A DNA stretch of 64,000 nucleotides from Octopus bimaculoides (taxonomy: Eukaryota). The notes under the pieces are model-generated. The model did not search any database. It had not been told where the DNA came from and saw nothing but the letters and a program-made list of their open reading frames with translations. The position numbers were made by a program, and so were the translations under genes. Below are positions 13,259-54,900 of the stretch, in pieces. The first letter of the stretch is position 1. Every line of letters begins with the position of its first letter. Location of the stretch: positions 74,057,020 through 74,121,019 of the forward strand of contig NC_068983.1 of assembly GCF_001194135.2 (NCBI RefSeq), given 5' to 3'.

Positions 13259-14872
13259 TTCTTTTTCTTTATTATAGGCGTAAAGCCTGAAAAAAAAGAG
13301 GGGACATCACAAGGACAGACAATACAAAACATGGGGTACATAGAACGTATCATATGAATATAATAAATAAAAGAATGAAATGGCTTACCTGCTCCCCAAA
13401 GCAAGCAGTTCCATTCTACTATTCTAATTAATCATAATTTCATCATTCTTTTTATACAGTCTTACATATCCTGTATGTATTCCAACAAATCATCGAACAA
13501 AACCACGTTCGGTAATGTGTCATACTGGAAAAAGTCTTGTTAGTTTTACTTCCTTACCAAACAGTGCCACCAGTTTATATGCTCTATCTTCCTCTAATAG
13601 TGCTGCTATCTCATTGCTGTGAAACAAGTCTAAGTCTTTGTCCAATTTTTCTCTTGTTAAATTTTATACTTTCACAATCCTGTTTTCAATCTCTTCTTAT
13701 ACATCACCATCATTCTTAAAGTCTGTCCTCTCGGCTGCCTTGTTTTCCTTGTTTGCACTATTTTTTCTCTTATCCTCTTCCTCCACCTCTCATATCTCTC
13801 TTGACTCCTACTTGTTGTCGGCTCTGGTTCCAGGATTCGAATCACACCCTCTTTCTCTTCTGTTTTTGCCGCCTTTCTTTTTTTTTTCTTTGTTTGGACT
13901 TTTTGGCAGTGACTCTGCACTTGTCCTTTTCTTGTTTGCCACTGTTTCTCCTACCGTTTCTTCCCCCACCACTGCTTTACCATCTCTGCCTGGTTTTTCT
14001 CCAATTCCTCCTGTTTATGGGGACACTGCCTGCATGTGTCCTCTACTTCTACAATTATAACATATAGGAAGTCTTCCCTCTACCACGATTCTCAATTGGG
14101 TCTCATCGGGGAGCATCAGCTCCTCTACTATTTTATGCATGTCTGGTAGGCTTATATGAATCACGACTTCTAGACCATATCCCCATCAGTTTATCTCATC
14201 AAACTTCTCCACCTTAATCACCTCCGCTTCCTTTTCACAATTATAGAGGATGGCTGCCACTAGCCATGCCTCATCTATTTCTGGGGGCACTCTCCCTATC
14301 CTGACTCTTGCAGCTCGTTTTCCGTAGTAGGTTGGCAAGAGTGCCCACTTAGCCATTCTCAAAGGCACCATGGAGCACCTTTTTGCTCCTTCTTCATTCA
14401 TGAAGCGCACTTCCACTGTGCCGTATTTCCTTCCTCTGGCGTAGACTGTGGTCACTCCTTTGACTTCCTGCATACACTCTTCAATGGCTACAATCTCTGC
14501 TACTTCCACACGTTTAATTTCAATAAACTATTATTTTCTTCTCGGCTTTTTGTAAAGCGTCGACAGGTGGCATTAATCGGAGGCAATCCCTCTCCTTTTC
14601 AAACAATCCATTAAACTTAAAAAAATTTTTCCTTCTAACTTCACTTATTTCAGTTGCAGCATGTCGGCTGAAAGGCTCTTGCCTGCTACTGCAGTGTAAC
14701 TGCAAGCTTCCATATCTTCACCCCAAAATGGGGAAGAAATTAATAAATTAAACAATAATTAACAAAATTCCAACAATATAGCAGTTTCAAAAATTCAAGA
14801 TACAACTCCCCACTCGCGACAACAACACTATCGTCCAACCAAATCAACAACGCAACTTGAAAAGCTGCGCGA
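13259..14872 (-). mobile_element. ORF1-only (HAL1-like) Tx1-type retroelement, copy 1; ORF1 disrupted
   Basis: ORF 14186-14509 (RGRKYGTVEVRF, RVRIGRVPPEID) continues past a stop to CYNCRSRGHMQAV. Poly(A)/AATAAA and terminal hairpin at 13259-13310. No ORF2 sequence. Confidence 0.85.
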
Positions 14873-17714
14873 CACTTATTTCTTTATTTGGCGCTACAGC
14901 CACAACACAGAGGGGGACACTACAAAGACAGACACAACACTACAACAGGGACATAAAACGAATGAGAATGAGATGTTATATAAAAATGAAGATATGAAAT
15001 GGCTGCATGGGCTCCACTCTCATGGAGTACCATTTGAACGTTTATATACACTATTTACAATCGTTCTATTTTTCTATTGTTTTTTTTCTTAATCATCTTT
15101 TTTTCTTTTTTTAACATGAAACACTTTTCTTTTTCTTTTTTTTTTACCTTTCAACAAAACAATTTTATTTNNNNNNNNNNNNNNNNNNNNNNNNNNNNNN
15201 NNNNNNNNNNNNNNNNNNNNNNNNNNNNNNNNNNNNNNNNNNNNNNNNNNNNNNNNNNNNNNNNNNNNNNNNNNNNNNNNNNNNNNNNNNNNNNNNNNNN
15301 NNNNNNNNNNNNNNNNNNNNNNNNNNNNNNNNNNNNNNNNNNNNNNNNNNNNNNNNNNNNNNNNNNNNNNNNNNCTTCTTGGTTTTCTCTTTTTCTGTTC
15401 CACTTCCTTTTCTTTCGCCACTCTGAACAGTCTCTCCATTTCACCCTCGTACAGTTGCACTCCTGAATCTTTTTCCTTCGCTGAGATAACCGGTATCTTC
15501 AACACTGTTTCCTCCTTCTATAACTCCTTCTCGAACACTTTTTCAATTTCTTTCTCCACCACCCTTTTGTCTTCCTTCCTTCCGGTCGCAGCTTTCATTT
15601 CCACCTCTTCTTTTTCTGGTTCTCTGGTGGCGGGCTAGCTCTTCCACTTCTCTATTTCATTAAATTGGCTATTAAGGCCTTACAAAGAGGGGACAAACAA
15701 GGAGAGACAAACGTAAAGAAGCTGTGGGCTGGACACGGACATTAATGAGATGAAGGTGATAACAAAAAAGGTTGAAATAAAAATGGGAGGGGCACCGGCG
15801 CCCACTGACCGATAACCCCTCGAAAACATTGTTCAATTTAAATATGCATGAAAAAAAAAAAGAACCCAATCATTTGGGTCCCCAAGCAATTTGACTTGCC
15901 GCCCGCAGACAACTCTGCAGCGACAAGTCAGGGCCCGCAAAAAGGAATGCGAGCTCTTTTTTGTCAAGGGTCATGGAGACCCTTGACAACAATGAATGCT
16001 GTACTATCTCCGCAGCTACCTGCGGAGGCCACAATGGACTGAGTGTGTGCTTNNNNNNNNNNNNNNNNNNNNNNNNNNNNNNNNNNNNNNNNNNNNNNNN
16101 NNNNNNNNNNNNNNNNNNNNNNNNNNNNNNNNNNNNNNNNNNNNNNNNNNNNNNNNNNNNNNNNNNNNNNNNNNNNNNNNNNNNNNNNNNNNNNNNNNNN
16201 NNNNNNNNNNNNNNNNNNNNNNNNNNNNNNNNNNNNNNNNNNNNNNNNNNNNNNNNNNNNNNNNNNNNNNNNNNNNNNNNNNNNNNNNNNNNNNNNNNNN
16301 NNNNNNNNNNNNNNNNNNNNNNNNNNNNNNNNNNNNNNNNNNNNNNNNNNNNNNNNNNNNNNNNNNNNNNNNNNNNNNNNNNNNNNNNNNNNNNNGCGGG
16401 CACTTTATCCTGCTCCATGGCCTTATTACGGCCTTTGGGGCAGTTCTTTTTGATGTGGCCAGCTTCCAGGCACATATGGCACCTCGGTTGCCAACCCTCA
16501 ATATTAACCGGGTACTTTGCTCCGGCCAACTTCAAGAAATCCGGAAAGCACACGTCTCCTACAGCCACTGGGGACCACAAGGTCAATGTCGCCTTGGCGC
16601 CCTGCCAGTTGACTGCAGGTGACATGTGCACATTAAGGAGCCTAGGTCCACTGTCNNNNNNNNNNGCGCCCTGCCAGTTGACTGCAGGTGACATGTGCAC
16701 ATTAAGGAGCCTAGGTCCACTGTCCCCCAAGCCCTGCCGAATGGTATCAGCGATCCACTCGGCCTTGTAAATTGGAGGTAGTCCATGAACCCAGGCTCTA
16801 ATTATTCTTCTTCCGCAGTAAGAGGGGAGGAACAAAATTTCCTCCCCCTGCAGAGTCTGGCTTGCCGCATTAGCAGCTTCCTCAGGGGAGTCAAACAACA
16901 ACCACACCGTTGCATATTTGACCCCCCTGGAGATGTAATATTTCTTTGTTGGCAAACAAATTGCCAACTCTTTTTCAATTACCTCTTTATTGAAGAGAGT
17001 AATGGTATTGCGTGACCTACAATAGGTCCGCATGACCACCGTCCTCTTCTCCATTTCTTTTAACCACTGCTTGGGTGGGCACAGTTCCCACTCGACTTAT
17101 CGTTTTCCTTCCCACCACCGTGAATTCCTCCTCCGTTGTTTTTTCTTCCATCTCCACATGTACTACCTTGTCCGTACTCTCCTGGTTCTCCGTCTGTTAT
17201 CTCTGTGGGCACCTCGCCTTCATGTGGTCTTTTTCCCCACATGTAAAACATACAGGCGGCCTGCCCTCCACCACCACCACTCTCAATCTCAAGTCATCGA
17301 GCAGCACTATCTCCTCAACAATTCGGTTTAAGTCCTCTATTGTTGCTTGGATGGTCAACTCAATCCCGTATCCCCAGTAGTTGATTCTTTGTGTCCTTGT
17401 GGCCTTCAGTATCTTGGCCTCCCCCTTCATGTTAAACATTATCTCTGTCATCAGCCATGTTTCTTTTAGTTGTAGGGGCACTTTGCCAACTCGCACTCTG
17501 GCCACACGTTTGCCACAGTATGATGGCAAAAGCACCCACTCCTCCGATCTTATTGCCTCCGTGGAATGCTTAATTGCCTTTTCCTCTGTTGCAATATCAA
17601 TAACAATATCAACAATTTGAACAGTAATAATCAAACAAACAAATATTTAACGCTCTGACTGACGACAAAAACACTCCGTTATGAATAAATCAAACCACCT
17701 ACACTACGCGACGC
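14873..17714 (-). mobile_element. ORF1-only element, copy 2, split into 14873-15660 (C-terminus and 3' end) and 17094-17714 (RRM/CCHC part) by copy 3
   Basis: Both halves align to consecutive parts of the element at 44732-45800 (EGRPPVCFTCGE..HMKA; QLYEGEMERL). Confidence 0.65.
15661..17093 (-). mobile_element. ORF1-only element, copy 3 (divergent family B, ATVWLLF), 5' truncated, nested in copy 2
   Basis: ORF 15870-17054 with CHMCLEAGHIKKNC knuckle; 3' box gaggggac at ~15687-15694; homologue at 54286-54900. Confidence 0.8.
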
Positions 17715-19260
17715 TCTTTCTTTTTGGCATTACGGCCATAGCATAGAGGGGGACACCACAAGGACAGACAACACAAAACGTCGGGTACATACAAACATAT
17801 AACGAATGAATAATGAAAATGAAATGGCTTTCCTACCCACCAAAGTAGGAAGTTCCATTTTTCAGTTATTTAAAATCAGTAATTATTTTCCAGTTTGTAT
17901 AGTGTTCACACCAAATAGTTTATTAACTCCTCGAATTCTGTCACTGATGGCATTTCGTCATATCTAAATCGTAATGCTGTTATTTGTATCCTGTCTGAAT
18001 ATTTCTCTCAATCTTGTTGCTCTCTCATCTTCCAGCAACACTGCTTTCATATTCCGGTTCTCCACCTTGTCTGCCAGTTTTATCCTTATTACGCCTTCCA
18101 TCTTGGAAATTATTTTTTCTATTTCCACGCTCTTTCCGTACTGAAGCATCACTCTTTCGTATTTCCCTTTCGTAAGTGTGTGCTTTTTCTTTTATGCTAA
18201 GGGCGTATTGCTTCTGCTTGTTGTTGCTGATGGATCTGCTTCCTCCCGTGTTTTATGTTTCTTCTGTTGTAGCTCCATTTTATGTGATGAATTTCTATCT
18301 TTCTTCCTTGTTTTGGCCTCTATGAACTTTGTGTCTTGTTCTACGTCTTCTGTCTTCTTCCCTACTTCCATTCCACCTTCTTGTGCTTCTGTTTCTGTAG
18401 TTTCCTTCGTTAGTTTAGGACACCTTCTTCTGATGTGACTCTTCTCTCCCCACTCATGACAAGTCGGAGGCCTCCCCCCCCCCCAACATTACTTCGAGTT
18501 TATCCTCATTGGGCAGCTCCACTGTTTCTGGAATTGCTCCGTATTCGCTCTGATTTGCCATGAAATAAATCTCAAGTCCGTACCCTTATCAATTTATTTA
18601 TTGGGTTTGGGTTATCCGTATCACTTTCACATCACCGCCTCCCTCCCCTTCTCCTGCAGTAAAAACTGCTGCTATTATCCATTCGGGATCAATTCTAAGT
18701 GAGATACTACCCACCCTGATCATGGTTGTGCGTTTACCCAGGGATGCAGGCAGGAGTGTCCATTTTTTCCCACGTAGCATCTTAGTGGAGTGTCTTCTCG
18801 CCTCCTCTTCAGAGACAAAGGTAACCGCTACTGAGGCGTACCTTCTTCCTCTAGTATAGAATGTTATATTTTCTTTCAACTTTTCCAGACACTCGTCCAC
18901 CTCCTCCTGCGTCACATTCTTGAGTTTCTGACTTCTTTTCGAAAACGTTCTGTAAGTTATTGCTCTACTTTCCATTTTCTCCATTTCTTCTGGGGAGGAG
19001 GGTCAACTTTATGTTCGACCCCTCCCTCTTTATCATCTTTTGCTATTTTTTGAGCAGCTCCGCATTACATTACAATACAATTCACTTTGTTCCAGCATAC
19101 CTGGGACGACAATGCCCTGACTTCCCGTTGCTGCCGCGTAGCTCTTCATTTCGATAAACAGTCACAGGCCGCCAAATAATGATGGCGTCACACTCACAAA
19201 ACTCCCTCTTGATTCAACTCGTAAAACTCCTTTTTTTTTTAATACAATTCGCAAAAAGAC
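17715..19260 (-). mobile_element. ORF1-only element, copy 4
   Basis: ORF 18598-18984 (RGRRYASVAVTF), a disrupted knuckle near 18430-18470, C-terminal ORF 17964-18152, and a terminal hairpin at 17725-17738. Confidence 0.85.
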
Positions 19261-19285
19261 AAGTATAAAGTATACATAGATGTAT

Positions 19286-20925
19286 TTATTACCCACTAGG
19301 GGCCAACAAAGAGGAGACAACACATCACATGCGGGACAAAGAACAAGTAAAAAAAAAAGGAACAAAACAACTTATGAATAATAATGAAAAATGTAAATGG
19401 GACCCACTTACGAGCAGCTCCGTTTTCTACCCTTTACTTCCTTTTGAAACCCGTTCCCTCGATCCCTCGGGAATATCAATCCCAGTTTCTTTCAGAAGCC
19501 TATCGTACATCGTAATTTCCGGCAGTGCTTCCCAATCGAAATCCACCTCGCCGAAACTGTAACCGTGCTTATACTTAAATATTTTTTCCCCTTGTTCCTT
19601 TGTTGGTAGCACGCACCTGTGCCAATCCTTAATGTTATCGAAACACACAGTTCCTACTTCGTTTATATCGTCCCAGGACAACACCTCTTCAATCAAATCG
19701 TCATTAGATCTATATATAAAAATTTTACATTTTTTCTTCCTTCTTGTTGACTGGTAAGAGGGAGTTTGTGAGTCTTTGTGTGTACTTGTCTTTTTTTGTT
19801 TTTGTGTCGGAAGGGAATGGGTAGGCTTGGTGTCTGTGGGCAAGGGTGGGTCTGAGAGGGTGTGGGTATGGTTTGCGGTTTAGAGTTCGAAACACTTGCC
19901 TTCTTTCTCTTTTTCCCACTTGTCTTCTGATATTACTTCCACTTCCTTTCTGGTTTCTTCTTCCCATTTGGTGGTACTCTCCAATCCTATTTCCATTTGC
20001 TCCTCCATATTCTTCAGTCGCTCTTCCTCTACTTTTTTGATCTGTGAAGGGCAGTTCGCTCTAATGTGGCCTTTTGGGCAATATTTAAAACATCGAAGGA
20101 CTCTTCCCTCCACCCTGTCCCTCATTTTCACGTGATTCTGTGATATTTTCCAGTATTTCACTTCAAACTTGGACAGTCATATTCAGTACCTGTCCTTTCC
20201 ATATGGCACTTTATTTTTTTGTGGCCTGGAGAACCACTATGTTGTCCTCGTTTCCTAGAAGGACAGCGGCTGCTACTCAAGCCACATCAATCTCTGGTGG
20301 AATTCCTACGCTAATTCTCGTCGCACGTAGACCACGGTAAGTGGACAGAAGCACCACTTCCTCACTCTTGATGGATGTCGCTGCTTGTTTCCTTGCTGTT
20401 ACCGCGTCCTTAAACCTCGCCTCCACTACTTCAAACATTGAACCTCTTGCGAGGTACACAATATCACTCCATATCGGTCTTAATGCCTTCTCTACCTGGC
20501 CTGTAGTCACAACGTCGATTTTTCCTTTTGAAACTGAAAATGTTCGGTACATAATGGTTCTTTCTTTAATACTATTACGCGTCTCTTGCGGGAGGGACAG
20601 TTTCACTTCAGAATTATTCCGACTCAAAAATTCATTGTACATTCCCAAATTCTCAATATCAATCTTCTTTCCCTGGCATTTTGCCACGTCAGCAAAATTC
20701 CTCTTTTCCTTGTTCAATTTCTGGTCCATCTTCCGGACCGCCTCCAACAATTCCTCCTCCAAAGACGATATGTCTGAGAAGCTGAAGTCTTCTACAGACA
20801 TATTTTCCCAAAGCTAACTCTCCTCTACGAGAAGAGAAAGCATAAACAAGCAAACAAACCGCAGCAAAGCAGCACAAAACGTTCACACACGATAGAAAAA
20901 ACACTATGAAAAACGCTAACAACCA
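19286..20925 (-). mobile_element. ORF1-only element, copy 5, with a 25-bp TSD
   Basis: ORF1 pieces 20277-20801, 19880-20161 and 19427-19843. Flanked by AAGTATAAAGTATACATAGATGTAT at 19261-19285 and 20926-20950. Confidence 0.9.
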
Positions 20926-20950
20926 AAGTATAAAGTATACATAGATGTAT

Positions 20951-22509
20951 TTGTTTATTACCCACAAGGGACCAATGCACAGGGGACAATACATCACATG
21001 TGGGACAAAAAAAAAACAAGAAAGAAAAACAAAACTATGTATGAGTAACCTGTATGATAAAGAAAAATGTAAATGGGACCGCTCACTCCACTTACGAGCA
21101 GCTCTATTTTCTACCCTTTACTTCCTTTTATAATCTGTTCCCTCAAGAATATTAGTCTGTTTCCTCTAGAAGCCTATCGTACGTTGTAAATTCCAGCAGT
21201 GCTTCCCAATCGAAATCCACCTCCCGATAACTGTAACCATGTTTATGACTGAATATTTTCCCCCCTTGTTCTTTCGTTGGTAGCATTACACCTGTGCCAA
21301 TCCTTAATATTATCCCCCCCCCCACCAAGTTCCTACTTTTAGATCACCCCAAGACAAAACTTCTTCGATTATAAAAACTTTACATTCATTCTTTTTTTGA
21401 CTGGGGGGAGGGAGTTTGAGGTTCTTTGTGTGTACATTTTTGTTCTTGTGTCGGAGGGGAATGGGTAGACTTGGTGTCTACGGGAGGAGGGTGGGTCTGA
21501 GAGGGTGTGGTTGGGGTGGGTGTGGGTTTAGAGTTCGAAACACTTGCCTTCTTCTGTCACTTTTTCCAGCTTGCTGTTTCCCACTGGTCTTCTGTTGTTA
21601 TTTCCTCCTTCTGGTTCTCTCCAACTTCTCTTCCATTTGTTCCTCTACATTCTCTTGTCTTTCTTCCGCTGCTTCCTTGGTCTGTGAAGGGCAGTCCGCT
21701 CTGTGGCCCTTTAGGCCACATTTATAACATCGAGGGATTCTGCCCTCCACCCTTACTCTCAGCACTGTACCTTCTATGGTAATCGTTTCTGCTAGTTTTT
21801 CTAGGCTTTCCGTTGAACCCTGAATAATTAGGTCCAGCGTCTGTCCTTTCCAGTTAGTACTTTCTGTCATAGTGGCCTGGAGGACCACTATTTCTTCCTC
21901 GCTGCCGAGAAGTACAGCGGCCACCACCCAGGCCACGTCAGCCTCAGGTGGGATTCCTTCTACCCTCACCCGAGATGCCCGCCTTTCCAGGTATGTAGGT
22001 AGAAGCACTGTACTATCCGTTCTCAGTGTTTCCGCCGAGTATTTCTTCGCTTCAGCGACGTCTTTCAGACGAATCTCTATATCTTGCCAGATTGTTGCCA
22101 AGGCCTTCTCAGTCTTCTCCGCCGGCATAATCCCTTTCTTTTTTTTCAATGGAGTACACCTTGAATACAATCGTTTTTTCGTTTAGTACTTTCAAAACTT
22201 GTTGTGAAGGAGACAACCTAACATCGCCTTCCTCTCTCACTAACATTTTCTCATAACATTTTAAATCCGATACATTTACCCCCTTACTCTGGATTTCAAT
22301 GATTCTACCGAAACCCTTCTAATCTTTTGTCCATCCCCTTTATTCACGCTACCAATCCTTCTTCGGAGGAAGACATGACAGACGCACTAAAACCAACGCA
22401 CAACATTCTTCAGCTGCTCTAAAGCAGAACACACACACACACGCACACGCACACGCACACACATTAAACCGTCTTACCACTGTAAAAATACCAGTAGAAT
22501 ACCGCATCC
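20951..22509 (-). mobile_element. ORF1-only element, copy 6 (close relative of copy 5)
   Basis: ORF 21598-22170 (PRCYKCGLKGH). 3' UTR similar to copy 5. Right flank AAGTATAAAGTATACATAG at 22510-22528. Confidence 0.9.
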
Positions 22510-22533
22510 AAGTATAAAGTATACATAGTTGTT

Positions 22534-23230
22534 GATTTTTTTAATTACCCATAAGGGGCATACACAGACAGGACAATACATGACATGTGGGGACGTATAA
22601 CAATTAAAAAATAATAAAATTATGATAAATATGAATGAAAATGATATATGGAAATGTGCTACTTACCCCACCTCAGCAACATCATTTACTTCCTTTTAGA
22701 TCCAGTTCAAATTAATTCCATATCGTTCTTCCAGTTCCCTTCACACTGCCTCTAGAAGTTCTTCTTCCAAGGTACGTGGGTAAGACAATCATCCCTTTCC
22801 GTCTTCATAGAGTTTACGGAGTATTCCCTGGCCTTTTCCTTATTTTTAAAATGCACATCAATTGTGCCGTATCGGTTTTCTCTGACAAGATATGCTATAT
22901 CTTGCCAGATTGGCTTCAAAGCATTTTCTATTTCTTCCGTAGGTTTGTTTTCTATTCTTTTTTTCCTTAATTGAATATACCTATATACTATTTTCCTTTC
23001 TTCCATGTTTCTTAAAACTTCTTTAGGTGGTAAGTTTTACATCACCACCTTCTCAATTCAACATTTTTTCGAAATTCAAATTTTTTAGGCTTGCCTCCTT
23101 CTTTGGAACCTCCGTCGCCCCCACGAAACTTTTACCCTTTAGGCACTTGTCCATTTTTTTACCGATTTTACAAGCTCCTCCTCGGATGACGACAGTTCTG
23201 AAGACGATACCTCTGATCCGCTCAGGTCCG
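22534..23230 (-). mobile_element. Internally deleted, 5'-truncated ORF1-only element, copy 7 (~0.7 kb)
   Basis: ORF 22752-23006 (LKPIWQDIAYLVRENRYGTIDVHF) joins directly to the 3' UTR. The 5' end breaks inside the DLSGSE motif at 23230. Confidence 0.85.
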
Positions 23231-25426
23231 AAGTATACATAGATGTATATAGTGGTCAAAGTATTGCGCTTTATATTTGTATTTGTAGAACTGGAAGATG
23301 TCAATTTAATTTTTTAAAGTTAATGCAACTGTAAGAATCCATTTATCGTAGATGAGATGTGCACGGATTCGAATTTCAGGAAGAACTATTTAACATTCAT
23401 GTAGTGTATAATTTATGTTGTGTAACTATGCGTATACTCAAATAATTCTAATTAATTTATCTACCAACTCGTTTGTAAATATCCCCTTATTTTGATATCA
23501 CTACTAGAAAGAGCAAAGAATAGTCACAAATGTAAATCCTTGTTAGATCTTTTATAATATTTAAAAGTTTTATAGAACCTATGTATACATGTTGATAGCA
23601 CTTCCGATTGACAATTTTTAAAATTCTTTTGTCTATATAATAATAGATATAGTTTCTATTATATTTGAGGAAAGCTGTAGCGATTCTTTTGTATAGAAAC
23701 GGCAACTAAAAGATTTGTGTGTATGGTGTAGCTGAGTCTATTATTGACCAATCTAATCTGCAGTTAACTTTGTTTTGTTTAAGTTTGTGTATATAAGTAG
23801 CTAATGAGGTAGTATTACTAGTTATACTCAGCTTAAAAGAATGTATGTGTGCTAAAAAATCTTTAAAATTAACAGAACTCTGTTTGTATACCATACTATT
23901 TGAATTATCAGTTAATATAATGATGCATTTGTATATTACATTAAATCTTCTACATTTGCCTTCTAAAGGACATAATTCTTTATTTTTACATGAACAATTT
24001 TTATTTTTATATTTCTGTTCAGAGGTATAATGCCTAATATTATTATGATTATTTGTTAAGGTGCATGGTATTATCATTGAATTTACTGTGGGATCGTTTG
24101 TCGTAGAGTTAGGTATATTTACTATTTGTGAATTATTATTATTAGCTTGTGGTGTTGTTATCTAAGGCATGTTGTATATTTTCAAATGCATGATTTTTAG
24201 AATTTTGCTGGGATTTTGTGACATCTATATTATTGCTAGGTGTTCTCGCATTTTGAGTATTAAATGAAATCCTAGTGCTACTGTTTATTTCGTTACTAAT
24301 ATTGTTATTGTTATTTCTAAAGTAATTTTTATATTTATTAATTTTTCTTCTATTAGAACTGGCGATAATTGATCCTATGTTTGGCGTTGTAGAGAAGGAT
24401 ATTTTAATTGATGATCTGTTAAATATGTGGTGATATTTATGATTACTAGGAAAGCTTTTTTTAAAAACTATATTTAAAAACATTTTTGCCTAACTCTTAA
24501 CGTTTAATGAAAAGGGAGGTGTATACCAAATAATTTCTCTCTTTCCGCTCTTAAGTAATTTATTACATTTATATATTGATTTAGGGATTTGCGTAATTTT
24601 CACTGAGTGTTTTTTTGTTATTACTATATTTAGTAACTTTTTTTATCATCACGTTTTCTAGATTTGTCGTTGTTTTATAGAAGTTTCTTCGTTTCGTATT
24701 GAGTATTATTGTTATAGTTAAGGTTACCTTTATTTCTTGTTTTAGTATAACATGCAGTTTTGATTGATTCCATCTGTGCGATGTAAATCTTTAGTATCCT
24801 TTATATATTTAATGCTTTGTTTTAATCCACTAGCAGCTTAAGCCTGATTGTAATAGCTTGCATGATTATTAAAAAATTCTTCATTATAAGATAGATCAGA
24901 TACTCTACAAGATATACTATTTACGATACTATTAAGTAATGATATATGATGATTTGAGTTAATGTTTATATATTTAAGGTATTCGTTGGGTTTATGGAAA
25001 GGAGAGTAAGTAGAAGTATTAAGATCTAGAGTTACGTCTAAGAAATTTGCTTTAGAGCAGCTTTCCTCAAATATAACAAATAAAAATTTTAATAAAATTT
25101 TTGTAGTTCTTCTCCCATTTTTCCTATTTTTCTTTTGGATCTGCCGTTATATACTAGGAGAGTATCATCTCTCTATAATCCTCCCTTCAGAGACGGGAAG
25201 TAATGCTTGGTCTCGTATAACAAATATAATCTTACTAAGTCGGTAATTTGTGCGGAATTGGACAATCTCATGGTGATATCAAATAAATAAAATAAATTAT
25301 TATTGTCAAAGTGGCACCATAATTTGTCATTGAATTTAATAAGTGTTTTTCTAGCTAATAGAATAATATCGATTTCTAGTGGTGTAATATCAGTGAGACT
25401 TGACTAGAATTATAGTTTTATTTAAT

Positions 25427-44731: not shown

Positions 44732-45800
44732 TTTCTTTATTAGGCATAAAGCCCCAAACACAGATGGGGACACCACAAGGACAGACAAGACCACAGTGGG
44801 GGCCAAAGAACATAAAACGAATGTAAATGAAATGAAAGTTATATAAAAATGAGAAAATGAAATGGACGCACGGGCCCCACTCCCATGCATTACCATTTGA
44901 ACTGTTATATGTACATTTTACAATTGTTCTCTTTTTCCTTAATTTCATACTTTTTTCTTGTCTTTAGTAAAACTTCATTAGTGGTTCAATTTCTCTTAAC
45001 TCCACTACTGGTGGTAACTCTTTAAATTCCACCTTTACTCCTGGCGGGTCAACATTATCCCCACACATCTCTTTCAATTTTCTATAGTTTTCTTTTTCGA
45101 TCACTATTGCCTTTATATCCTCCGCGTAGACGTTTGAAGGCACCTTTACTGTTACTATTGAATGTAACTTGATTATTTTTTTCTCTGTTTCAACATTTTT
45201 CGGGTACGTTACATAATACCATACTCCTTCTCCTCCTCGTATCTTCTTTCCTTTCTCTTGGACTTTTGGTTCTCTCTTTTCTTCCTCCCTAACTAGTCTC
45301 TCCATCTCCCCTTCATACAGTTGGGTTTCCGACTCTTTCTCCACTGATAACTCCACTTTCTTTTTACTTTCTTTTTCCTTCCTACTGCCCTCCTTCACAG
45401 TTTCTTTTCTCACCTCTTCTCTCTTCTTTTTCTGCTTCTCTGGCGGAGAACTCATTCCTCCGCTTCTCCTTTTCTTTTTAGCCATAGTGAATCCCTTCTC
45501 CGCTTCTTTTTCTGTTGCCTTGCCCTGCACTACCTGGTCCACACTCTCCCGTCTCTCCACCTGTTCTGTTTGTAGCTTCCTTTGGGTGCACTATGCCTTC
45601 ATGTGGCCCCTTTCTCCACATGTGAAACACACTGGTGGCCTACCCTCCACCACGATCCGTAGTCGAGTGTCATCGGGAAGCACGAACTCCTCTGCAATAT
45701 TATGTAGGTCCGGTAGGGTAATGTGGGTTAGGATTTCTACCCCAAAACCCCACCATTTGATTCCTTTTGACCTTTCCACCTTAATTATTTCTACCTTGTC
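44732..45800 (-). mobile_element. 5'-truncated ORF1-only element, copy 14
   Basis: ORFs 45591-45800 (CFTCGERGHMKA) and 44964-45560; terminal hairpin 44742-44754. Confidence 0.85.
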
Positions 45801-46927
45801 TTTACATTTGTCGGAGGGGATTGGGTAGGTTTGGTGTCTGCATGGGGAGGGTGTGGTGAAGAGGGAGAGGGTGGGCATTGGGTGAGTTGGGGCTCACAGG
45901 CACTTTCTTCCTCTTTCTATTTTTCTTCCTCTTGACCGTTTCCCATTCCTTATCCTCTGGTGTTTCTTTTGTCTCTTCTTCTTCCTCTCTCCTTTCCTGT
46001 GGTGGCGGCTGTCGCCCCTCTACCATTTTGGTTGATGGAGGGCAGTTCGCTCTTATGTGGCCCTTCTGACCACATTTGAAGCAGCGCGGTATCCTGCCCT
46101 CCACTCTTACGTTCATAACCACTTCGTCCAATGTTATCGTTTCCACCATCTCTTCCAACGCCTCGCTCGAACCCTGCACTATCATGTTTAGGACCTGGAC
46201 CTTCCAGTTTGAACTTTTTGACTTCGTTGCCTGGAGCACCACTATTTTGCCGTTAGTCTCAGCCAAAACAGCGGCCGCTATCCAGGCAACGTCAATTTCC
46301 GGCGGAATTCCTTCTACCCATACCCGAGACGCTCTACGTCCCAGGTACGTGGGAAGAAGTACAAGTTCTTCATCCTTCAATGAAGTTGCCGCATACTACT
46401 TCGCCGTGTCTTCGTTTGTGAATCTCACCTCCACTACACCAAATTTCGGCCCTCTGGCAAGATATATTTCTTGCCGGATTGGCCTCAGCACCTTCTCCAC
46501 CTGCGCCGTCAACATGTGGTCTATCTTGCCTTTCTTAATTGAGAATGTTTTGTACATAATAGTTCTGACTTTCATACTTTTTGTTATTTTGAGCGGAGGG
46601 GTCACGTTAACGTTGTAACCGTCACGCTTCACCAACGTCTTATATTTCTGTGTCAATTTCTACATTTTCCTCTTCTTTTCGGGCAACCGCCGCAAACTTC
46701 CTCTTATCGAGTTCCACGTCCATTGCGTCAACCGCTTTCAACAATTCTTCCTCAGATGCCGAATACTCAGACCCGCTAAACTCTGAGTAAAAGGTATTCC
46801 TTTTACTTTTAGCCCTACCAACTCTCAAAGAGAGGACATACGACTACACCGCTGCAAAACAGCACGCAACAAATACAACAATCCATTCTGAACGATATTT
46901 CACAAATAATACAAACCCTTACTGGCG
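45801..46927 (-). mobile_element. ORF1 element, copy 15 (close paralogue of copy 13), 3' end missing
   Basis: ORFs 46640-46828, 46396-46656 and 45802-46380 closely match 43254-44615; similar 5' UTR. Confidence 0.88.
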
Positions 46928-46948
46928 AACTCACACTTTGAACATCGA

Positions 46949-48688
46949 TTTTTTTTTATTGCCTATAAAAGGTAAAACAAAGAATCTTCCATTAACATTA
47001 CAACACATAGAGACAATACCAACGCGACAAACACAAAATCGGGGAAATAAAAATACAAAAAGATGAAATCAGAAGAAATTAAAATAACGAATGGTAATAT
47101 GTAAGAATGAAAAAATAAGAAATGGAAGTGATGTTACCTGCCCCTTCAAGTAACATCACTTACTTGCCTTTATGCCTGTCCTTCATAATATCTATACCGT
47201 ATCTTAATTTCAGTTCTTCGTATTCTATATTTTTCGGTAAATTCTCCATATTGTAATTCACCTTCCATACTATAAAGTCCTCGAATTTTTTGATTTCGTT
47301 CAAATGTCTTTCTGTTATTAGAATTACTGTGATTTCTCCAGACTCATTCATGATCGTCCACGTCCACATGGACTGTGTCTTTCCATCTCTCCACTATCTC
47401 CTGCAGTTCTTTCACTGCCTCATAATACACCAAACATGCATAACATTCAGAGAAAGAGGAAGTTTCTAACACATTGTGTGTGGTGTCCTTCTTTTTCTTT
47501 TGTTTTCGTGTTGGTGAGAAATGGGTAGGTATAGTGTCTGCAGGGGGAGGGTGGNNNNNNNNNNNNNNNNNNNNNNNNNNNNNNNNNNNNNNNNNNNNNN
47601 NNNNNNNNNNNNNNNNNNNNNNNNNNNNNNNNNNNNNNNNNNNNNNNNNNNNNNNNNNNNNNNNNNNNNNNNNNNNNNNNNNNNNNNNNNNNNNNNNNNN
47701 NNNNNNNNNNNNNNNNNNNNNNNNNNNNNNNNNNNNNNNNNNNNNNNNNNNNNNNNNNNNNNNNNCTGTTTGTTTTTTAGTATCTCCTGTGTATTCCGCT
47801 CTTCTGCTTCTTTGTTCGGTTGAGAGCAATTCGCTCTAATGTGGCCCTTCAGACCACATTTATAACAGCGAGGGATTCTGCCCTCCACCCACACTCTCAG
47901 ACTTATGTCGCCTATGGTTATTGTCTCTGCCAATTTTTCTAGTGTTTCTTTATCGCTTTGGATGTTCATTTGTAATGTTTTCCACGTCCCGTCTTCAGTT
48001 GATGTAGCCTGGATAACGGACACCTTTTCCTCACATCCGAGGAGTGCAGCCGCCGCCACCCAAGCCGCTTCCATATCCGGTGGTATTCATTCTACTCTGA
48101 CCCTGGAAGTCCTTCTTCCAAAATACATGGGTAGAAGGACTACATTCTCAGTTTCACCGTTTTTATAGCCATCCTTTGTGCTGCCTCTTCCGACTTGAAC
48201 TGTACTACTATTGAACCGAATTTATTGCCTCGTGAAAGGAATATTACGTCTTTCGTTACAGTTCGTAACGCCTTTTCTATGGTTTCAATTTCAATAATTT
48301 CCACTTTATTTTTTTCTGCTGCAATTAATTTATACGTAATGGTTCTTCTTTCCATACTTTCCTGCGGTGGCGACAGTTTCACTTCTCCACCCACTTTCGT
48401 TGCCATTTTCTGATATTTCAACATTTTCGTGAGGTCCACTTCACATGATTTAACCTCTGCTATTTCTGCAAAGCTTTTCTTCTCCTTCAAAACTTCATCC
48501 ATTTTGTCGAGAGCCCTAACCAGTTCATCTTCCGAGGATGACAATTCTGACCCACTCAGGTCAGAACAGAACATATTTTTTGCCATTTGGTCCAGTTAAT
48601 TCTCCTCAACACGGAGAAAAAGCACCGCCGTCAAAAGCTTCACACAAAAATTCAAACAGACAGCAAATCACCAATAGCACGCACTGCC
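46949..48688 (-). mobile_element. Full-length ORF1-only element, copy 16, with a 19-bp TSD
   Basis: ORFs 48140-48586, 47466-48074 and 47160-47460. TSD AACTCACACTTTGAACATC at 46928-46946 and 48689-48707. Confidence 0.9.
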
Positions 48689-48709
48689 AACTCACACTTT
48701 GAACATCTG

Positions 48710-49145
48710 TTTTTTTTTTTATTACCCATGCAGGCTAACATAGAGGGGACAGAACAAAACATGTGGGACGTAAAACATATATAAAAAAACAGAAATGAAT
48801 GTTATAACGTATGAAGACATGAATATGATAAAATGGAAATGGAACCACTNNNNNNNNNNNNNNNNNNNNNNNNNNNNNNNNNNNNNNNNNNNNNNNNNNN
48901 NNNNNNNNNNNNNNNNNNNNNNNNNNNNNNNNNNNNNNNNNNNNNNNNNNNNNNNNNNNNNTCGAACCATATATTCATGTATTTATTTCTCTTGCTTCTT
49001 ATTTGGTATTACACACTTGTGATGCCCCTCCACGTTATCAAACCCCACAGTTCCAATGCACTTTATGTCCCATTCCACCGAATCCCTCAACAGTTCGTCA
49101 CTATGCAACATGTAAATCCTACACTTTTTCCTTCTCTTTTTTGAC
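48710..49145 (-). mobile_element. 3' portion of an ORF1-only element, copy 17 (same family as copy 19)
   Basis: C-terminal domain KCRIYMLHSDELLRDSVEW; 3' UTR near-identical to 51986-52110. Confidence 0.85.
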
Positions 49146-51975
49146 TCGTGATTGGCCCTTCGCAAGACTCCGCATCCGACCCCGAGAGACACTGCAGACC
49201 GGCAAGAAAGTCCTCGAGGGCTCTCCCACCACCAGGACCGCCGTCACCACCGAACAGCTGGGTGCAGTACTTCCGAAAGGCCTCACACATTTTCTCGGGT
49301 TCGTTTACCAAAACGCCATTTTGATTCGTCAAAGATCGTATAGTGGAACGATTTCCTTGCCGAGCTTCCACCACTCGGGCCCATCTAGCGGCCTTGATTC
49401 CTTCATTTCCCATCGCACGTAACTTAGCTCTGGCAATACTTCCCATGTGTTGGGCTTCAAGATGCTGGTTTAACTCCAATCTTTTCACTTTTGCTTGGTC
49501 CGTATTACCAGTCCTCCAGGCTTCTTCTAGTCCTTTAACTAAACCATCTCCTATTCTACATCCCTTCTTAACTAAACTTATGCTAAACCTAATAGACTCA
49601 TATTTGATGGCTCTTTTTAGGGCGTACCACTATTTGTTATTAATGATGGTACCTGTCAATGCCCTCTGTATTAATATATTGATTCGCTTTCTGTATTCCT
49701 CAATCACCAAAAGGGACGTATTGAGTTTCCAGTAGCCAGATCCCTGACTATGTAACTTATCTATTGTCAGTTTACAGGTAACCAACTTGTGGTCACTGTA
49801 GCTGAGTAGAAAAAACTGTGGACACTTAGCTATGGACTTATCTGTTTCTCTAATTAAAATCATATCTAGATATGTTCTGGAACACCCGTCACTATTTGAC
49901 CACGTCCATTGTGGATTGTTCGGGTGTTCCAACCTATATGGATCTGCTAGCTGAAAGTGACTTAGCAGATCCCGTAAGCCTGGGTTACATTTTCTGTTCA
50001 TGATCGAGCCAACACAATCTGTGTGTGCCTCACATATTGTGTTAAAGTCTCCTAACAATACTTGCGAATGCGACATGGCCAGGAACTTGCCCAGGTCACG
50101 AAAATATTCACATTGCGGGTCCATAATGTTGGGTGTATAAATAGCAACTAGCCTGATTATCTTGCCACAACTGAATGTCAGGTCGAGAACGATCAGCCTG
50201 CCTTCTGGATCAGAAAAAAAACAACTTTTTCTCGGCTNNNNNNNNNNNNNNNNNNNNNNNNNNNNNNNNNNNNNNNNNNNNNNNNNNNNNNNNNNNNNNN
50301 NNNNNNNNNNNNNNNNNNNNNNNNNNNNNNNNNNNNNNNNNNNNNGGGGGGGGGGAAGATCTCTTGGCTCCTTTACCCGGGTTCCGTTGCAACAATCACA
50401 TCCAATTTTCTTGACAAACGAAGCGTCCTTGCTTCCAGCTAGACATCAGGCCACGAACATTTACACAACCAATGTGAATAGACATGACTTACCTGTTAAT
50501 CAGGGCTGTCCGGTGGAGAGGGACCCTCCACCTTTTCTTGATACAGGGTCGGAGGTGGCAGGTCTTGGGAAATAGATTGGTTAAAATCCAGTCTCATTAC
50601 TGACACAGACTTTCTATACGTATTTAATAAAATATTATGAGTCTTTTTGTCCATTTCATATAGTTCATAATTTTTGTATTTGTCCGACAGTTTTGCTACC
50701 CTGGTGGCTGATTTTTTTGTTTTTATCTCTCATTAAATCCTCATTGTTACTAAGTAGTGCCACAATCCCTCTGTCTGCTATTTCTTTCCTTGTTGTTTTT
50801 GGTTGGACTCTTTTTGCTATCTTTTTTGGTCGTGGTTCTGCTTGTTTTGGTTGGTTTGCATTTTCTTTTTGCTAGTAACTTTATTTTCTTTTTTTCTTTT
50901 TCTTCCTCCTCATCTTCAGATTCCTCCTCGCCTTCCTTACAGTATTTTTTTATATGGCCTAGCTGGCCACACAGAAAACATCGGGGTTTATACCCCTCGA
51001 CAAAAACGTTGAGGAACTCCTCCCCAACTTCTATTTTTTCCGAAAGCTTTTCTAATACAGCTTGTTCAGTTTGAATAATGAGGTGGACCGTGTGGCCAGT
51101 CCAATTTGCCTTTTCAGAGACGGTAGCCTGAAGTAGTTTTATCTCATCTACTCTTTCTGACAGGACTGTCGCCATCAACCACATAGGGTCGACTTGAGGT
51201 GGAACCTTTGGTATCCGTATTTTGGCTGTCTTCATACCCATGTATATTGGTTTTAAAATTACGTCTTCTGTTGCCAAGGATTTCACTGAGTGCAATTGTG
51301 CAGTTTCGATATTTTTTAGGTGTACCTCGATGGTACCGAACTTTTTTCCTCTGGCTAGATATGTGATATCCTGCCAGATGGGTTTTAAAGATTTTTCTAC
51401 CTTATCCTCGCTTACTCGCTCGATTTTTCTTTCTTTTTGGCAGTATGCCTTGAATATAATAGTTTTTATCTTCTCTGACAATAAAAACTCCTCTGGGGGT
51501 TGAACCTTGACAACGCCATCTTGAACTGTAATCATGTCCTTGTACATCAACAAATCATTTTTATTCGTCGACAGTTGGCGAGTTCTATCTCCAGCTGCAG
51601 ACGCAAAACTTATTTTCTGTTTGCCTTCCTCCTTTGAAGGCTTTTCACCTCGATGTTCCTCTTTGCAACGGGAGTCTTCGACAATAGTGGGAATTCATTT
51701 TCAGACGAATCTGAAACATCTTTCAACAATATTTTTTCAACTTTTTTTGCCTCTAAATCTGTCGAATCCTCGTTAGACGAAGACAAACTTCTTGGCATTT
51801 TGCCGGCAATTAATGTTTTCCCCCACGGGGGAAAACACAATAGTTTTCGAACGAAAACTGTAAAACAAATTTAAACAGCAAATACAACAGGAAATAACAC
51901 GGAAACAGTCCACAGAAACTACACTTAAGGTACAGACGCACTTCAGCAATAATACTTCCAGCTCACAGAGACGAA
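49146..51975 (-). mobile_element. Second autonomous-type Tx1 element (ORF1 + APE + linker), RT missing
   Basis: ORF1 50750-51840; ORF2 starts MSIHIGCVNVRGLM at 50485; APE 49630-50124 (LLGDFN, SYSDHKLV, GYWKLN); linker 49146-49488 breaks at GPIT. Confidence 0.88.
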
Positions 51976-51985: not shown

Positions 51986-52970
51986 CTTTATTGCCCACCG
52001 GGGGCTAAACATAGAGGTCACAAACAAAACATGTGGGATATAAAACATATATGAAAAATAAAATGGATGTTATAACGTATGAAGACATGAAAATGATAAA
52101 ATGGAAATGGAACCACTCGCCCCACTTACGAGTGGCCTCATTTTCTACTTTTAAAATCCTGAACCTTCTAACACATCGATACCTGTTTCCTCCAACCACC
52201 AATCATATGTAGTAAATCCTAGGAATGAGCTCCAGCTGAGAGCTGCAGTCCACCTCCCAAAAATAAAATCCAACCATATACTCATGTATTTTTTCCTCCT
52301 GCCTCTTGTCTGGTATTACACACAAGTGATTTTCCTCCACATTATTATACCCTACAGTTCCAATACACTTTATATTCCATTCCGCCGTATTCCTTAACAG
52401 TTCGTCGCTAAGCAACATATAAATCCTACATTTTTTCCTTCTCTTTTTTGACTTGGGGGAGGGGTTTTGGGCTTCTTCTGTATTTTCTGGTTGCTTTTTT
52501 CTTGGCTTTGATGTACATTCTACTCTTATGTGTCCCTTCAGGCCACATTTAAAGCTGCGTGGAACTCTTCCTTCCACCCTGACAGTCATAATTGTTTCTT
52601 CCATGGTTATTGTTTCTGTAATCTTTTTCATCGTTTCTTTTGACCCTTGGACTATCATCTCCAGTTGTTGACCTCTCCAGTTGACACACTCTTTTCTTCG
52701 CCTGGAGCACAACCATGTTATCCTCATTACCACAGAGGACCGCATCTGCCACCCTGGTCACATCAATCTCCGGTGGGATTCCTTCAACCGTGACCCTTGT
52801 TGCTCTCATGCCTCTATACGTGGGCAACAGCACCACTTCTTCGCTCCTAATTGTCGACCCTGCATGTTTCCTTGCTGCTGCTGCATTACGAAACCTCACT
52901 TCTACTGTTCCAAATGTTGGACCTCTAGTCAGGTATATTATGTCTTCCCAAAATCTGCTTTAACGCCTTT
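51986..52970 (-). mobile_element. 5'-truncated ORF1-only element, copy 19
   Basis: ORFs 52549-52899 and 52203-52745; terminal hairpin 51993-52005. Confidence 0.85.
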
Positions 52971-53880
52971 TCCTCACGTATCAAAATGCATTTCTCAGCA
53001 CATTTCTCTGGCATTTTCACTCTTATTATTTCCTCCAGCCTCTCGACATTTCTCTCCATCTGCTCGCAATTCTCGTACTTTATCAAAACCCCATTGTATT
53101 TCACATCTTTATCTGTTCTCTCCTCCTCTTCTTGTACATTATTAGTTTCTGGCTTTTTAATCTCTCTTTTGTTTTCTGTTGACCGTTCCTTTGACTTATT
53201 TTTCCTTTGCTTTTTAGGGTTAGTAGCTCCATTTTCGTTCTTCACCTTTGTTTTCTCTGTTTCACACTTCTGTCTCTCTTCTATTTCCTCAGTGTGGTCT
53301 ACAATGTTTTCCTCCTCTGCTTGTGCTTTCTCTTGCTGTGGCTGTGTGAACTCATATGGGGGCATTTGGTCTTTATATGACCGCTTTCCCCGCATATGTA
53401 ACAATTTGGTTTCCTTCCCTCGACTACAACATTTAACGTTCTCTCATCCTCCACTTCTATCTGGTAGGGAATTCTTTCTATGTTCTCGAATGTAGCAAAA
53501 TGCCACATTTTGAGTCCAAATCCCCACCATTTGCGCACTTTTGATTTCGCCACTGGTCCCAATTCCGGCTCCTCCTTGGTTGCAGCCAGCACTTTTGCAA
53601 CCAACCATTCTGGTTTAATTTCTGGTGTAACTCTGGGTATACGTATTCTCACACTTCTTCTTCCTCTATAACTTGGTAGTAATGCTATTTTTTCACTTCT
53701 TAAAATGTTGGTTGCATGCTTGGTTGCCTCTTCTATAGTGGCGAACCTCACCTCTACCGTACCGAACTTTCTTCCTCTGTTGATGTACGTGGCTTCATTG
53801 ACAATTTCACCCAGGCATTCCTCGATTTCCTCTTCCGTCACCATTTCAATTTTACCGGTTTCGACAGCCTGTGTACGATG
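52971..53880 (-). mobile_element. ORF1 element, copy 20; 3' UTR missing, 5' end in N-gap
   Basis: ORFs 53299-53844 (CYICGESGHIKTKC) and 52925-53404. Confidence 0.85.
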
Positions 53881-54285
53881 NNNNNNNNNNNNNNNNNNNN
53901 NNNNNNNNNNNNNNNNNNNNNNNNNNNNNNNNNNNNNNNNNNNNNNNNNNNNNNNNNNNNNNNNNNNNNNNNNNNNNNNNNNNNNNNNNNNNNNNNNNNN
54001 NNNNNNNNNNNNNNNNNNNNNNNNNNNNNNNNNNNNNNNNNNNNNNNNNNNNNNNNNNNNNNNNNNNNNNNNNNNNNNNNNNNNNNNNNNNNNNNNNNNN
54101 NNNNNNNNNNNNNNNNNNNNNNNNNNNNNNNNNNNNNNNNNNNNNNNNNNNNNNNNNNNNNNNNNNNNNNNNNNNNNNNNNNNNNNNNNNNNNNNNNNNN
54201 NNNNNNNNNNNNNNNNNNNNNNNNNNNNNNNNNNNNNNNNNNNNNNNNNNNNNNNNNNNNNNNNNNNNNNNNNNNNNNNNNNNNT

Positions 54286-54900
54286 TCGTTCTTGGGGGTA
54301 GCCCGTAGACCCAGGCTCTTCTTATTTTCTTCCCACAATAAGTGGGAAGGAACAATATTTTATCCCCTTCAAGGGGCCTGCTGGCAAATATACCAGCCTC
54401 CTCGGGGGTACCAAACAGCAACCATACCGTCGCAAATTTGGTCCCCCGAGAAATAAATTTTATAGTTGGCAGGTGGTCTGCCAACTCCTCCTCTATCACA
54501 TTCTTGTCGAAGAGGGCGATGGCACCACGTGACCTGGAAAAGGTCTGTAGTACCACCGTCCTCTTAAGATCTTTAATCTAATGTTTGGGTGGGACCACCT
54601 CCCACTCCAAAGCAGCGGCACTGTCTATAAATTTCTGCTTCTGGTCACCTCCTCCGTATCCAACTTGATTAACTTGGTTTCTCGCGGCACTGGCTTCCTC
54701 ACGGCAGTGGCCTTGGCATAGCTCTCCATACTAGAGACACTACCACTTGCCATAGCTGGGAAAAAAACGCAGCAGCTCGCGTGAAACGTAACCGTAATAG
54801 TTCCACAAAAATCACAATTATTTACCGAGACAGTTTTCACAAAGTAACACAACAGTATTCACAATAATTCACAGAGCCGTTATACCGCCAAGCACTTCGT
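54286..54900 (-). mobile_element. 5' part of a family-B ORF1 element, copy 21 (right end of the array)
   Basis: RGTKFATVWLLF...AWVYGLPP, homologous to 15870-17054; rest lies in the N-gap. Confidence 0.8.

Follow-up and report, generated by a model that had tools for sequence, protein, structure and literature searches.

A 64-kb stretch of Octopus bimaculoides DNA was analysed here (the window), and between positions 13259 and 54900 it carries an array of L1/Tx1-type retrotransposons that lack long terminal repeats (non-LTR elements). The array holds 19 copies that bear the first open reading frame of the element (ORF1) and two tail fragments, all of them on the minus strand; no copies were found in the remainder of the window. 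The co-orientation is complete: all 132 high-scoring segment pairs (HSPs) from tblastn searches of the window with eight ORF1 queries, all 35 significant domain hits of an ORF1 profile (spanning 14018-54577) and every match of a profile of the 3' untranslated region (UTR) lie on the minus strand. The chance of such co-orientation among 19 copies is approximately 2^-18. The copies fall into two blocks, and the interval between these, 23.0-30.5 kb, is without ORF1 and contains other repeats (Table 1).

Approximately 13 of the copies are ORF1-only units of 1.5 to 1.8 kb, in which ORF1 leads straight into a 3' UTR of 150 to 215 nt without the apurinic/apyrimidinic endonuclease (APE) and reverse transcriptase (RT) of a second frame (ORF2). 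Only three copies contain any ORF2 sequence (36124 to ~34700, 42808 to 36398 and 51694 to 49138), all full of stops, and ORF1 is fully open in three of the 19 (43257-44630, 35117-36124 and 50753-51694). Amino acid identity among the ORF1 copies ranges from 25 to 85%, giving approximately eight to nine families at a 50% threshold. Sixteen 3' ends were located, two diverged ones included: 13262, 14881, 15648, 17704, 19284, 20949, 22536, 30505, 30813, 32709, 36398, 43034, 44734, 46949, 48710 and 51986. Each tail consists of an AATAAA(R)AAA motif whose A-runs reach just 3 to 11 nt, and long poly(A) is absent.

An initial annotation of this DNA had described approximately 21 co-oriented copies, some 14 of them ORF1-only, with ORF2 sequence in three copies only, sixteen 3' poly(A) ends and ORF1 families too diverged for a single tandem duplication. 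The tblastn and ORF1 profile results agree with these copy numbers and with the orientation, and the three ORF2-bearing copies are indeed the only ones, and all dead. The diversity of families was also upheld, and the direct repeats of 19 to 23 nt that bound several units proved to be far better conserved than the units themselves. The number of 3' ends stands as well, but their description as poly(A) ends does not.

Table 1. Members of the array and associated features, listed from the upstream to the downstream end
Feature	Coordinates	Strand	Description
Family G copy, most upstream	54290-54900	-	ORF1 residues ~62-184 at 54290-54607, presumed 5' UTR above; 70.6% nucleotide identity to 16772-17093; remainder lost in gap 53881-54284
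Copy H	53308-53880	-	ORF1 residues ~87-270 with CCHC knuckle; 5' part in gap; recognisable 3' end not found
A-like ORF1-only copy, 5'-truncated	51986-52953	-	Frameshifted ORF1; 3' UTR ends in stem-loop and AATAAAG at 51986
ORF2-bearing copy B51694	49138-51985	-	5' UTR, open 314-aa ORF1 (50753-51694), APE and N-terminal RT (50223-49138), then breaks; from Pfam zf-CCHC and tblastn with ORF2 homologues
3' fragment of A-like ORF1-only element	48710-49146	-	85-87% identical to 52453-51985; A11 tail; 3' UTR profile E=1e-27; abuts broken ORF2 of B51694
ORF1-only unit A'48520	46949-48688	-	~1.7 kb including 211-N gap; identical 19-mers at 48689-48707 and 46928-46946, probably a target-site duplication, alternatively a conserved 5' end
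Copy A46861	45805-46948	-	5' UTR and ORF1; 82-86% identical to copy 44630; ends inside lysine-rich (A-rich) tract
C/D-family ORF1-only copy, 5'-truncated	44734-45803	-	CCHC knuckle, lysine/glutamate (K/E) linker, ~90-aa C-terminal domain, 3' UTR; one in-frame stop
Unit 44630, best-preserved ORF1-only unit	43034-44698	-	1.66 kb; open 458-codon frame (449 aa from ATG) 43257-44630; 215-nt 3' UTR terminating in CCCCTTGTGGGTAATAAAAAA; no APE/RT; 21-nt target-site duplication 44699-44719 / 43011-43031 (20/21 identical)
Near full-length ORF2-bearing copy B42808	36398-43010	-	ORF1 42808-41976, APE 41434-40603, RT 39120-37696, C-terminus 37681-36995, then 560-N gap and 3' end 36398; many stops; first 33 nt at 44733-44699, separated by inserted unit 43034-44698
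Copy B36124	34700-36397	-	5' UTR, open 336-aa ORF1 (35117-36124), ~80 aa of APE; breaks beside microsatellites
Degraded ORF1-only copy	32709-33941	-	CCHC knuckle 33867-33941; C-terminal-domain trace 32950-33057; 3' end 32709; interrupted by ~390-bp repeat (33148-33541) resembling a short interspersed element or miniature inverted-repeat transposable element (SINE/MITE)
C/D-family ORF1-only copy	30813-32272	-	One 278-aa frame (31064-31897) with knuckle, linker and C-terminal domain
Short copy, 3' end only	30505-30785	-	Bounded by GAGTTTTCACGTG repeats, ambiguous between a duplication and a common 5' end
Fourth 23-nt module copy	28106-28128	-	22/23 identical; beside LTR-retrotransposon fragment, no element tail in front
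Remnant copy X	22536-23036	-	ORF1 residues ~66-181; 3' UTR ends at 22536
ORF1-only unit U22324	20949-22509	-	1.56 kb; 23-nt module at 22510-22530 and 20926-20948
ORF1-only unit U20789	19284-20925	-	1.64 kb; 23/23 identical module at 20926-20948 and 19261-19283
ORF1-only copy E18984	17704-19260	-	From tblastn and 3' UTR profile
D-family ORF1-only copy, split	14881-17742	-	Pieces 17742-17096 and 15661-14881
Nested family G ORF1-only copy	15648-17093	-	Sits in A-rich lysine-codon tract of the D copy; degenerate ~19-nt flanking duplication; contains 343-N gap and artefactual 59-bp duplication at 10-N gap
ORF1-only copy F14527, most downstream	13262-14880	-	ORF1 14018-14527; 3' end 13262

The ORF2 sequence has the order that defines the L1/Tx1 superfamily, an N-terminal APE followed by the RT. 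In B42808, Pfam RVT_1 was matched on 37678-39042 (4e-31), and tblastn with homologues carrying PF03372 and PF00078 delimited the APE and RT of this copy. RVT_1 is present in the ORF2 homologues, in some together with APE or zf-RVT, and their best match among solved relatives was human L1 ORF2p (1e-47, against 1e-19 for R2). The closest homologues, P0057 and P0089 (59-65% identity), have PF13966, the zinc-binding domain of the zf-RVT type at the C-terminus of ORF2; the matching stretch of the window is degraded and lies partly in the 560-N gap. For ORF1, a structure model of the core (predicted local distance difference test score, pLDDT, 77) gave a Foldseek probability of 1.0 to two-RRM proteins, with hnRNP A1 UP1 as the best match, and Pfam placed a zf-CCHC knuckle after the two RRM-like domains. 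No Transposase_22 hit was obtained in ORF1 with Pfam. ORF1 is therefore a type I ORF1 protein (RRM plus CCHC), as is reported to be typical of animal Tx1-clade elements (PMC5203782). L1-Tx1 is among the recently active long interspersed nuclear elements (LINEs) of octopus (PMC13282606, PMC8967140) and the sole L1-like group in octopus repeat annotation (PMC13282606). Assignment to the Tx1 clade, as opposed to L1 proper, is plausible, given an ORF2 closest to L1, a type I ORF1 and the listing of L1-Tx1 in octopus annotations.

The two kinds of element share their 3' end. An identical 21-mer ends both the ORF1-only copy at 43037 and the ORF2-bearing copy at 36398, and a comparison of 23 ends, taken from five other loci as well as the window, defined a terminal module consisting of a GTCCCCTCTnTGT box, a stem of 3 to 4 bp with a loop of 4 to 7 nt, and AATAAA. 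A stem of at least 3 bp was found at the locked position in 21 of the 23 ends, where 5.5 would be expected. The hairpin test was scripted, since the MAFFT alignment misplaced stems by one column between families. The stems vary as CCC/GGG, GGC/GCC, CCT/AGG and CCTA/TAGG, which amounts to compensatory change, and the stem-loop is present in both ORF2-bearing ends (36398 in the window and 18068 in locus L004), so that the ORF1-only elements have their 3' end in common with an autonomous partner. This fits the likeness to HAL1 proposed in the initial annotation, as the elements are ORF1-only, bear the 3' end of a partner and are multi-copy.

Elements of this kind also occur outside the window. 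The ORF1 homology search was run on the core trimmed of its K/E-rich tail, as the untrimmed query was swamped and returned 2 hits. The ORF1 profile matched 435 clusters (50% identity) at E<=1e-10. In a small sample of seven other loci, D-family copies occur in L002, L003 and L004 of O. bimaculoides (85-93% identical) and in L005 of O. sinensis (75-80%). Copies are solitary in L001, L002 and L005, while L004 has at least five co-oriented copies, one of them ORF2-bearing, and L003 has two arranged head-to-tail. The initial annotation had allowed that the ORF1-only copies might be one-off deletion products, and had placed the stacking at one internal locus. The multi-copy, dispersed and duplication-flanked state of the elements speaks against the former, and the stacks at L004 and L003 show that the latter was too narrow.

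The window contains 15 runs of N in its 64 kb, and artefactual duplications of 38 to 82 bp occur at four 10-N joins, both of which count in favour of unlinked repeat contigs having been piled up by scaffolding, a danger that the initial annotation had named. The duplications themselves are exact overlaps of the flanking ends (48, 59, 38 and 82 bp at gaps 4322, 16656, 25545 and 37684), and they imply that the contigs overlap with nothing missing, the short duplication being the sole artefact. Here the scaffolder joined contigs without merging them, once inside an ORF1 and once inside the RT. Colinearity with homologous copies holds across seven larger gaps; protein HSPs cross those at 38839 and 42474 in frame, and at 15171, 36434, 47555, 48850 and 50238 the order, orientation and approximate length agree. 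Different copies lie on either side of gap 53881-54284. Contigs 16666-25544, 26193-36433 and 42498-47554 hold three to five co-oriented copies each, junctions included, without interruption, and the array is thus independent of scaffolding. In addition, 19 of 19 copies on one strand would not be expected from random scaffolding, and L003 and L004 offer comparable arrays. An assembly artefact is hardly credible as the source of the array. Homopolymers of C or G, 10 to 11 nt long, border two of the gaps (42464-42473 and 50346-50355) and are probably a sequencing or assembly breakpoint, not biology.

The 70 nt after each tail were compared in 120 pairs (median score 6), and the top matches were all between neighbours: 20951/19283 (23/23 identical), 22538/20951 (20/23), 48715/46949 (19/19) and 44733/43037 (20/21). 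Neighbouring units flanked by these repeats are just 40-73% alike, or they come from different families. With an identity of 95-100%, the repeats are therefore younger than the units, and they behave as target-site duplications. Clear duplications of 21 to 23 nt flank at least three units and weaker ones flank two more. The ORF2-bearing copy below unit 44630 has the unit's 21-mer 12 nt within its 5' UTR. Of the 23-mer there are three successive occurrences and a fourth at 28106, in a non-element context; that no element tail precedes this fourth copy indicates that the 23-nt module is target DNA. Both modules are absent from the seven other loci. The two independent duplications at 43011-43031/44699-44719 and 19261-19283/20926-20948 both start with ACATC after a T-rich stretch (TTTTG/ACATCG and TTTAT/ACATCT), which hints at a nicking-site preference (n=2).

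Of the approximately six insertion events that can be resolved, four lie no more than 15 nt from a resident 3' end, compared with approximately 2% expected by length for a unit of ~1.7 kb. The two pieces of the split D copy (Table 1) are together colinear with the intact O. sinensis copy at L005 9924-11299. Tandem elements separated by a duplicated target are known to result from multiple insertion at one site, as described for R1, jockey and P elements (McGurk and Barbash 2018, PMC5932611). A search for an RNA-gene or microsatellite target between the copies found no Rfam family, tRNA or common junction microsatellite.

Arrays of neighbouring, similar units can also be built in situ by unequal crossing-over, like a satellite, and then diverge in place. 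This would account for the short modules common to neighbouring junctions, and neighbours 19261-20307 and 20926-21958 are indeed mutually closest in the window (73% nucleotide identity), while the identity between the D-D junctions of L003 and L004 reaches 90.7% across 804 bp. Tandem duplication does not, however, produce modules that are 95-100% identical around units that are 40-73% alike or of another family (A versus B, 40% amino acid identity), nor does it sit well with eight to nine families at 25-50% amino acid identity. The ratio of nonsynonymous to synonymous substitution (dN/dS), a check that the initial annotation had suggested, is 0.24 between A-family copies (46861 versus 44630); for the D family, between O. 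sinensis and O. bimaculoides, it is 0.20-0.23 over ORF1 and 0.10-0.14 over a ~90-aa C-terminal domain. Values of 0.1-0.25 indicate purifying selection, so that the divergence accrued in functional lineages before the copies died, and not neutrally in dead DNA. For the window we rate tandem duplication as largely refuted, and as the origin of the array it is quite improbable.

On this evidence, we consider it probable that the array is a nest of L1/Tx1-type elements in which HAL1-like ORF1-only elements were inserted serially, in one orientation, at or beside resident 3' ends. The RNAs of the ORF1-only elements would carry the 3' module of their relatives (GTCCCCTCTnTGT box, stem-loop and AAUAAA(R)AAA), and the ORF2 protein of these relatives may recognise this end and copy the RNAs in trans. 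Because the module is common to both kinds of element, copying in trans by the partner's ORF2 protein is the most likely source of the missing activity, as judged from sequence. Entry would be by target-primed reverse transcription with target-site duplications of ~20 nt, such as those seen for several units, with a preference for sites at the 3' end of a resident copy or a few nucleotides downstream, or in an A-rich lysine-codon tract. The shared orientation could arise if the A-rich 3' end of the incoming RNA anneals, as it probably does, to the nicked T-rich strand. Every insertion would make another target site, leading to head-to-tail growth, and later decay, truncations or template switches, and unrelated insertions would have given the present mosaic.

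Several observations weigh against serial insertion as a complete account. The window has no intact ORF2, and for two repeat pairs, 48689/46928 and 30785/30505, conserved 5' termini are an alternative to duplications. Copies 46861, 51694 and 36124 are 3'-truncated without a downstream remainder, which simple nesting fails to explain. The seven other loci were each picked via ORF1 gene models, and in one of them, L001, the 3' ends point both ways (9531 on the minus strand, 10666 on the plus strand and 12165 on the minus strand, with an ORF2 fragment at 20149-20840 on the minus strand, all within 11 kb), so co-orientation is not universal. Lastly, duplications are missing from the precise D-D and D-F junctions of L003 and L004 (AATAAAGAAAAC followed directly by GTTGAGCAGCAG), so that a further route, for example template jumping or unequal exchange, may contribute.

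These precise junctions, with 0 to 3 extra nucleotides, are what would be expected of concatemers made in a single event, in which the RT, having reached the 5' end of one template RNA, continues on the 3' end of a second one. End-to-end template jumping is documented for R2-type enzymes (as mentioned in PMC11371274), and chimeras in the window join the 5' part and the 3' part of different families (46861/45800 and 51694/49146). Nevertheless, several units in the window are singly bounded by duplications of ~20 nt and one unit is nested in another, both of which point to separate insertion events. The preservation of neighbours is also very uneven, ranging from the open 458-codon frame to heavily broken copies. 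We regard single-event concatemers as an unlikely origin for the array; it is probable, though, that jumps or switches of template, or recombination among co-oriented copies, also played a part.

A function for the host, be it as domesticated gag-like genes, as a uni-strand cluster for PIWI-interacting RNA (piRNA) or as a telomere-like system in the manner of HeT-A/TART, was also considered. The strict co-orientation recalls uni-strand piRNA clusters, and the LTR-retrotransposon fragment in the array is likewise on the minus strand; the ORF1 proteins have been under purifying selection, and several copies have NCBI or UniProt gene models. Against this, ORF1 is open in just three of 19 copies, and the termini of the copies are those of retroelements, with target-site duplications. 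The longest ORF of the window has its best protein matches in O. bimaculoides entries, and one of these gene models, UniProt A0A0L8G4Z0 ('CCHC-type domain-containing protein'), is spliced from 46395-45805 and 45590-44967 on the minus strand. It is an annotation artefact, in which the ORF1 of one copy is fused to the C-terminal domain encoded by its neighbour, a copy of a different family. No telomeric repeats were found in the window, and the related arrays, L003 and L004, are far from chromosome ends (at 51.45 Mb in a chromosome of 94.6 Mb and at 28.1 Mb in one of 58.2 Mb). The telomere analogy of the initial annotation thus does not hold, since target-site duplications imply endonuclease-dependent, internal insertion, and a host function in any of these forms is very improbable.

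The array can be compared with four known systems. The HAL1 (half-L1) elements of mammals arose repeatedly and are thought to use the ORF2 protein of a partner (PMC5753468), and the octopus elements resemble them as non-autonomous LINE derivatives made of a 5' UTR, ORF1 and the 3' end of a partner, without ORF2 (PMC5753468); unit 44698 to 43034 is a complete example with defined termini. The octopus parent, in contrast, is a mollusc L1/Tx1-type element with a type I ORF1 and not a coiled-coil/Transposase_22 protein, several ORF1-only families have gained a further C-terminal domain that is under selection, a specific stem-loop with a short AATAAA motif forms the 3' end instead of a long poly(A), and the copies are stacked head-to-tail. 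The octopus elements are therefore a HAL1 analogue and not members of the HAL1 family. With HeT-A/TART/TAHRE they share the presence of a gag-only element beside RT-encoding relatives, head-to-tail and in one orientation. The Drosophila arrays, however, are added at chromosome ends without target-site duplications, whereas octopus units have duplications of ~20 nt, no telomeric repeats were found with them, related arrays are chromosome-internal, and we saw no sign of a host function.

The tandems of R1, jockey and P elements (PMC5932611) likewise arise when one target is hit repeatedly, which leaves copies of the duplicated target between the elements, and the 23-nt module, repeated three to four times, shows just this pattern. 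They differ in being two copies of one element, where the octopus pile reaches up to ~20 copies of several diverged families, and in that the reused site in octopus is made by the elements' own ends. Tx1L and its relatives, which belong to the same superfamily, target repeats or RNA genes, and insertion at a defined sequence can give co-oriented clusters (PMC3747384, PMC5753468). The search of the octopus array yielded no target of this sort, be it an RNA gene, a microsatellite or a DNA transposon; insertion seems to favour the 3'/5' boundary of the elements themselves, and the specificity is loose, with solitary copies in unrelated contexts.

The ORF1-only frames encode two RRM-like domains, the CCHC knuckle and a K/E-rich linker, followed in some families by the additional C-terminal domain. 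In the C/D families this domain is ~90 aa long (44967-45260 and 31253-31450 on the minus strand of the window, and also in L002, L004 and L005) and has the motif YxKNVxTEKxI...VKxP; no Pfam match was found for it. A derivation from ORF2 was tried and rejected. BLAST hits to the region of RT motif C were consistent yet marginal (YAEDIKAIV versus FADDITVFV), and profile-profile comparison gave a probability of 0.9%. A structure model of the domain, made from a two-sequence alignment, had a pLDDT of 42 and was unusable. A Logan contig (L006, positions 1-1826, SRR11869385) has ORF1 to just before the zinc knuckle fused at nt ~1245 to post-RT ORF2 (P0089 residues 186-365). This internal-deletion derivative shows one route to ORF2-less elements.

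Other repeats have entered the array and its surroundings. The ORF2 of B42808 is interrupted between APE and RT by a 1.3-kb foreign insertion (39259-40578). Within this insertion lie a tandem repeat of exactly matching 41-bp units (x 2.3, 39427-39520) and ORFs on the plus strand without a Pfam match. Between the two array blocks, and on the strand of the array, lies an LTR-retrotransposon pol fragment (28146-29132, minus strand; Pfam RVT_1 and RT_RNaseH_2). An A15 tail at 27922-27936 (minus strand) closes a sequence of ~185 bp that starts directly after the fourth 23-nt module and is probably an unrelated short retroposon. A ~385-bp repeat, which looks like a young SINE/MITE, forms an inverted pair in the left flank (2572-2950 on the plus strand and 3974-4422 on the minus strand), with a third copy inside an array member (33148-33541) and two in L001 (8036-8427 and 8863-9252), the copies being 90-92% identical. 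A dispersed repeat of ~400 bp is found in both array flanks in inverted orientation (5658-6055 and 60845-61228) and in L001, L002 and L005, at 72-91% identity, and it occurs in O. sinensis too. Apart from the pol fragment, the ORFs of both flanks and of the 23-30 kb interval matched no Pfam family.

Octopus genomes are rich in repeats. What is new here is a diversified mollusc analogue of HAL1, with an extra selected domain, together with end-directed multiple insertion; the kinds of element and the stacking were already known, and no new class of genetic system is revealed. Published surveys of octopus repeats give L1-Tx1 as a class only (PMC13282606, PMC8967140), and a large proportion of the "L1-Tx1" copies may be ORF1-only hitch-hikers with a selected protein of their own. 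The covarying 3' stem-loop common to these elements and their partners is a concrete candidate for the recognition element. For repeat annotation, the findings are relevant because gene models such as A0A0L8G4Z0 fuse two elements.

A broader proposal, which we put forward tentatively and as doubtful, is that octopus harbours a long-lived and diversified guild of gag-only elements that parasitise Tx1-type LINEs, evolve as selected lineages, home to resident 3' ends and form self-propagating co-oriented arrays, some with a new C-terminal domain that would possibly capture the partner's ORF2 protein. If true, this would be a second, independent and far more elaborate HAL1/HeT-A-like radiation, in a mollusc, and its arrays could seed satellites or piRNA clusters. 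The array bears on the origin of LINE parasites and on that of transposon tandems, which may later become satellites or source loci of small RNAs.

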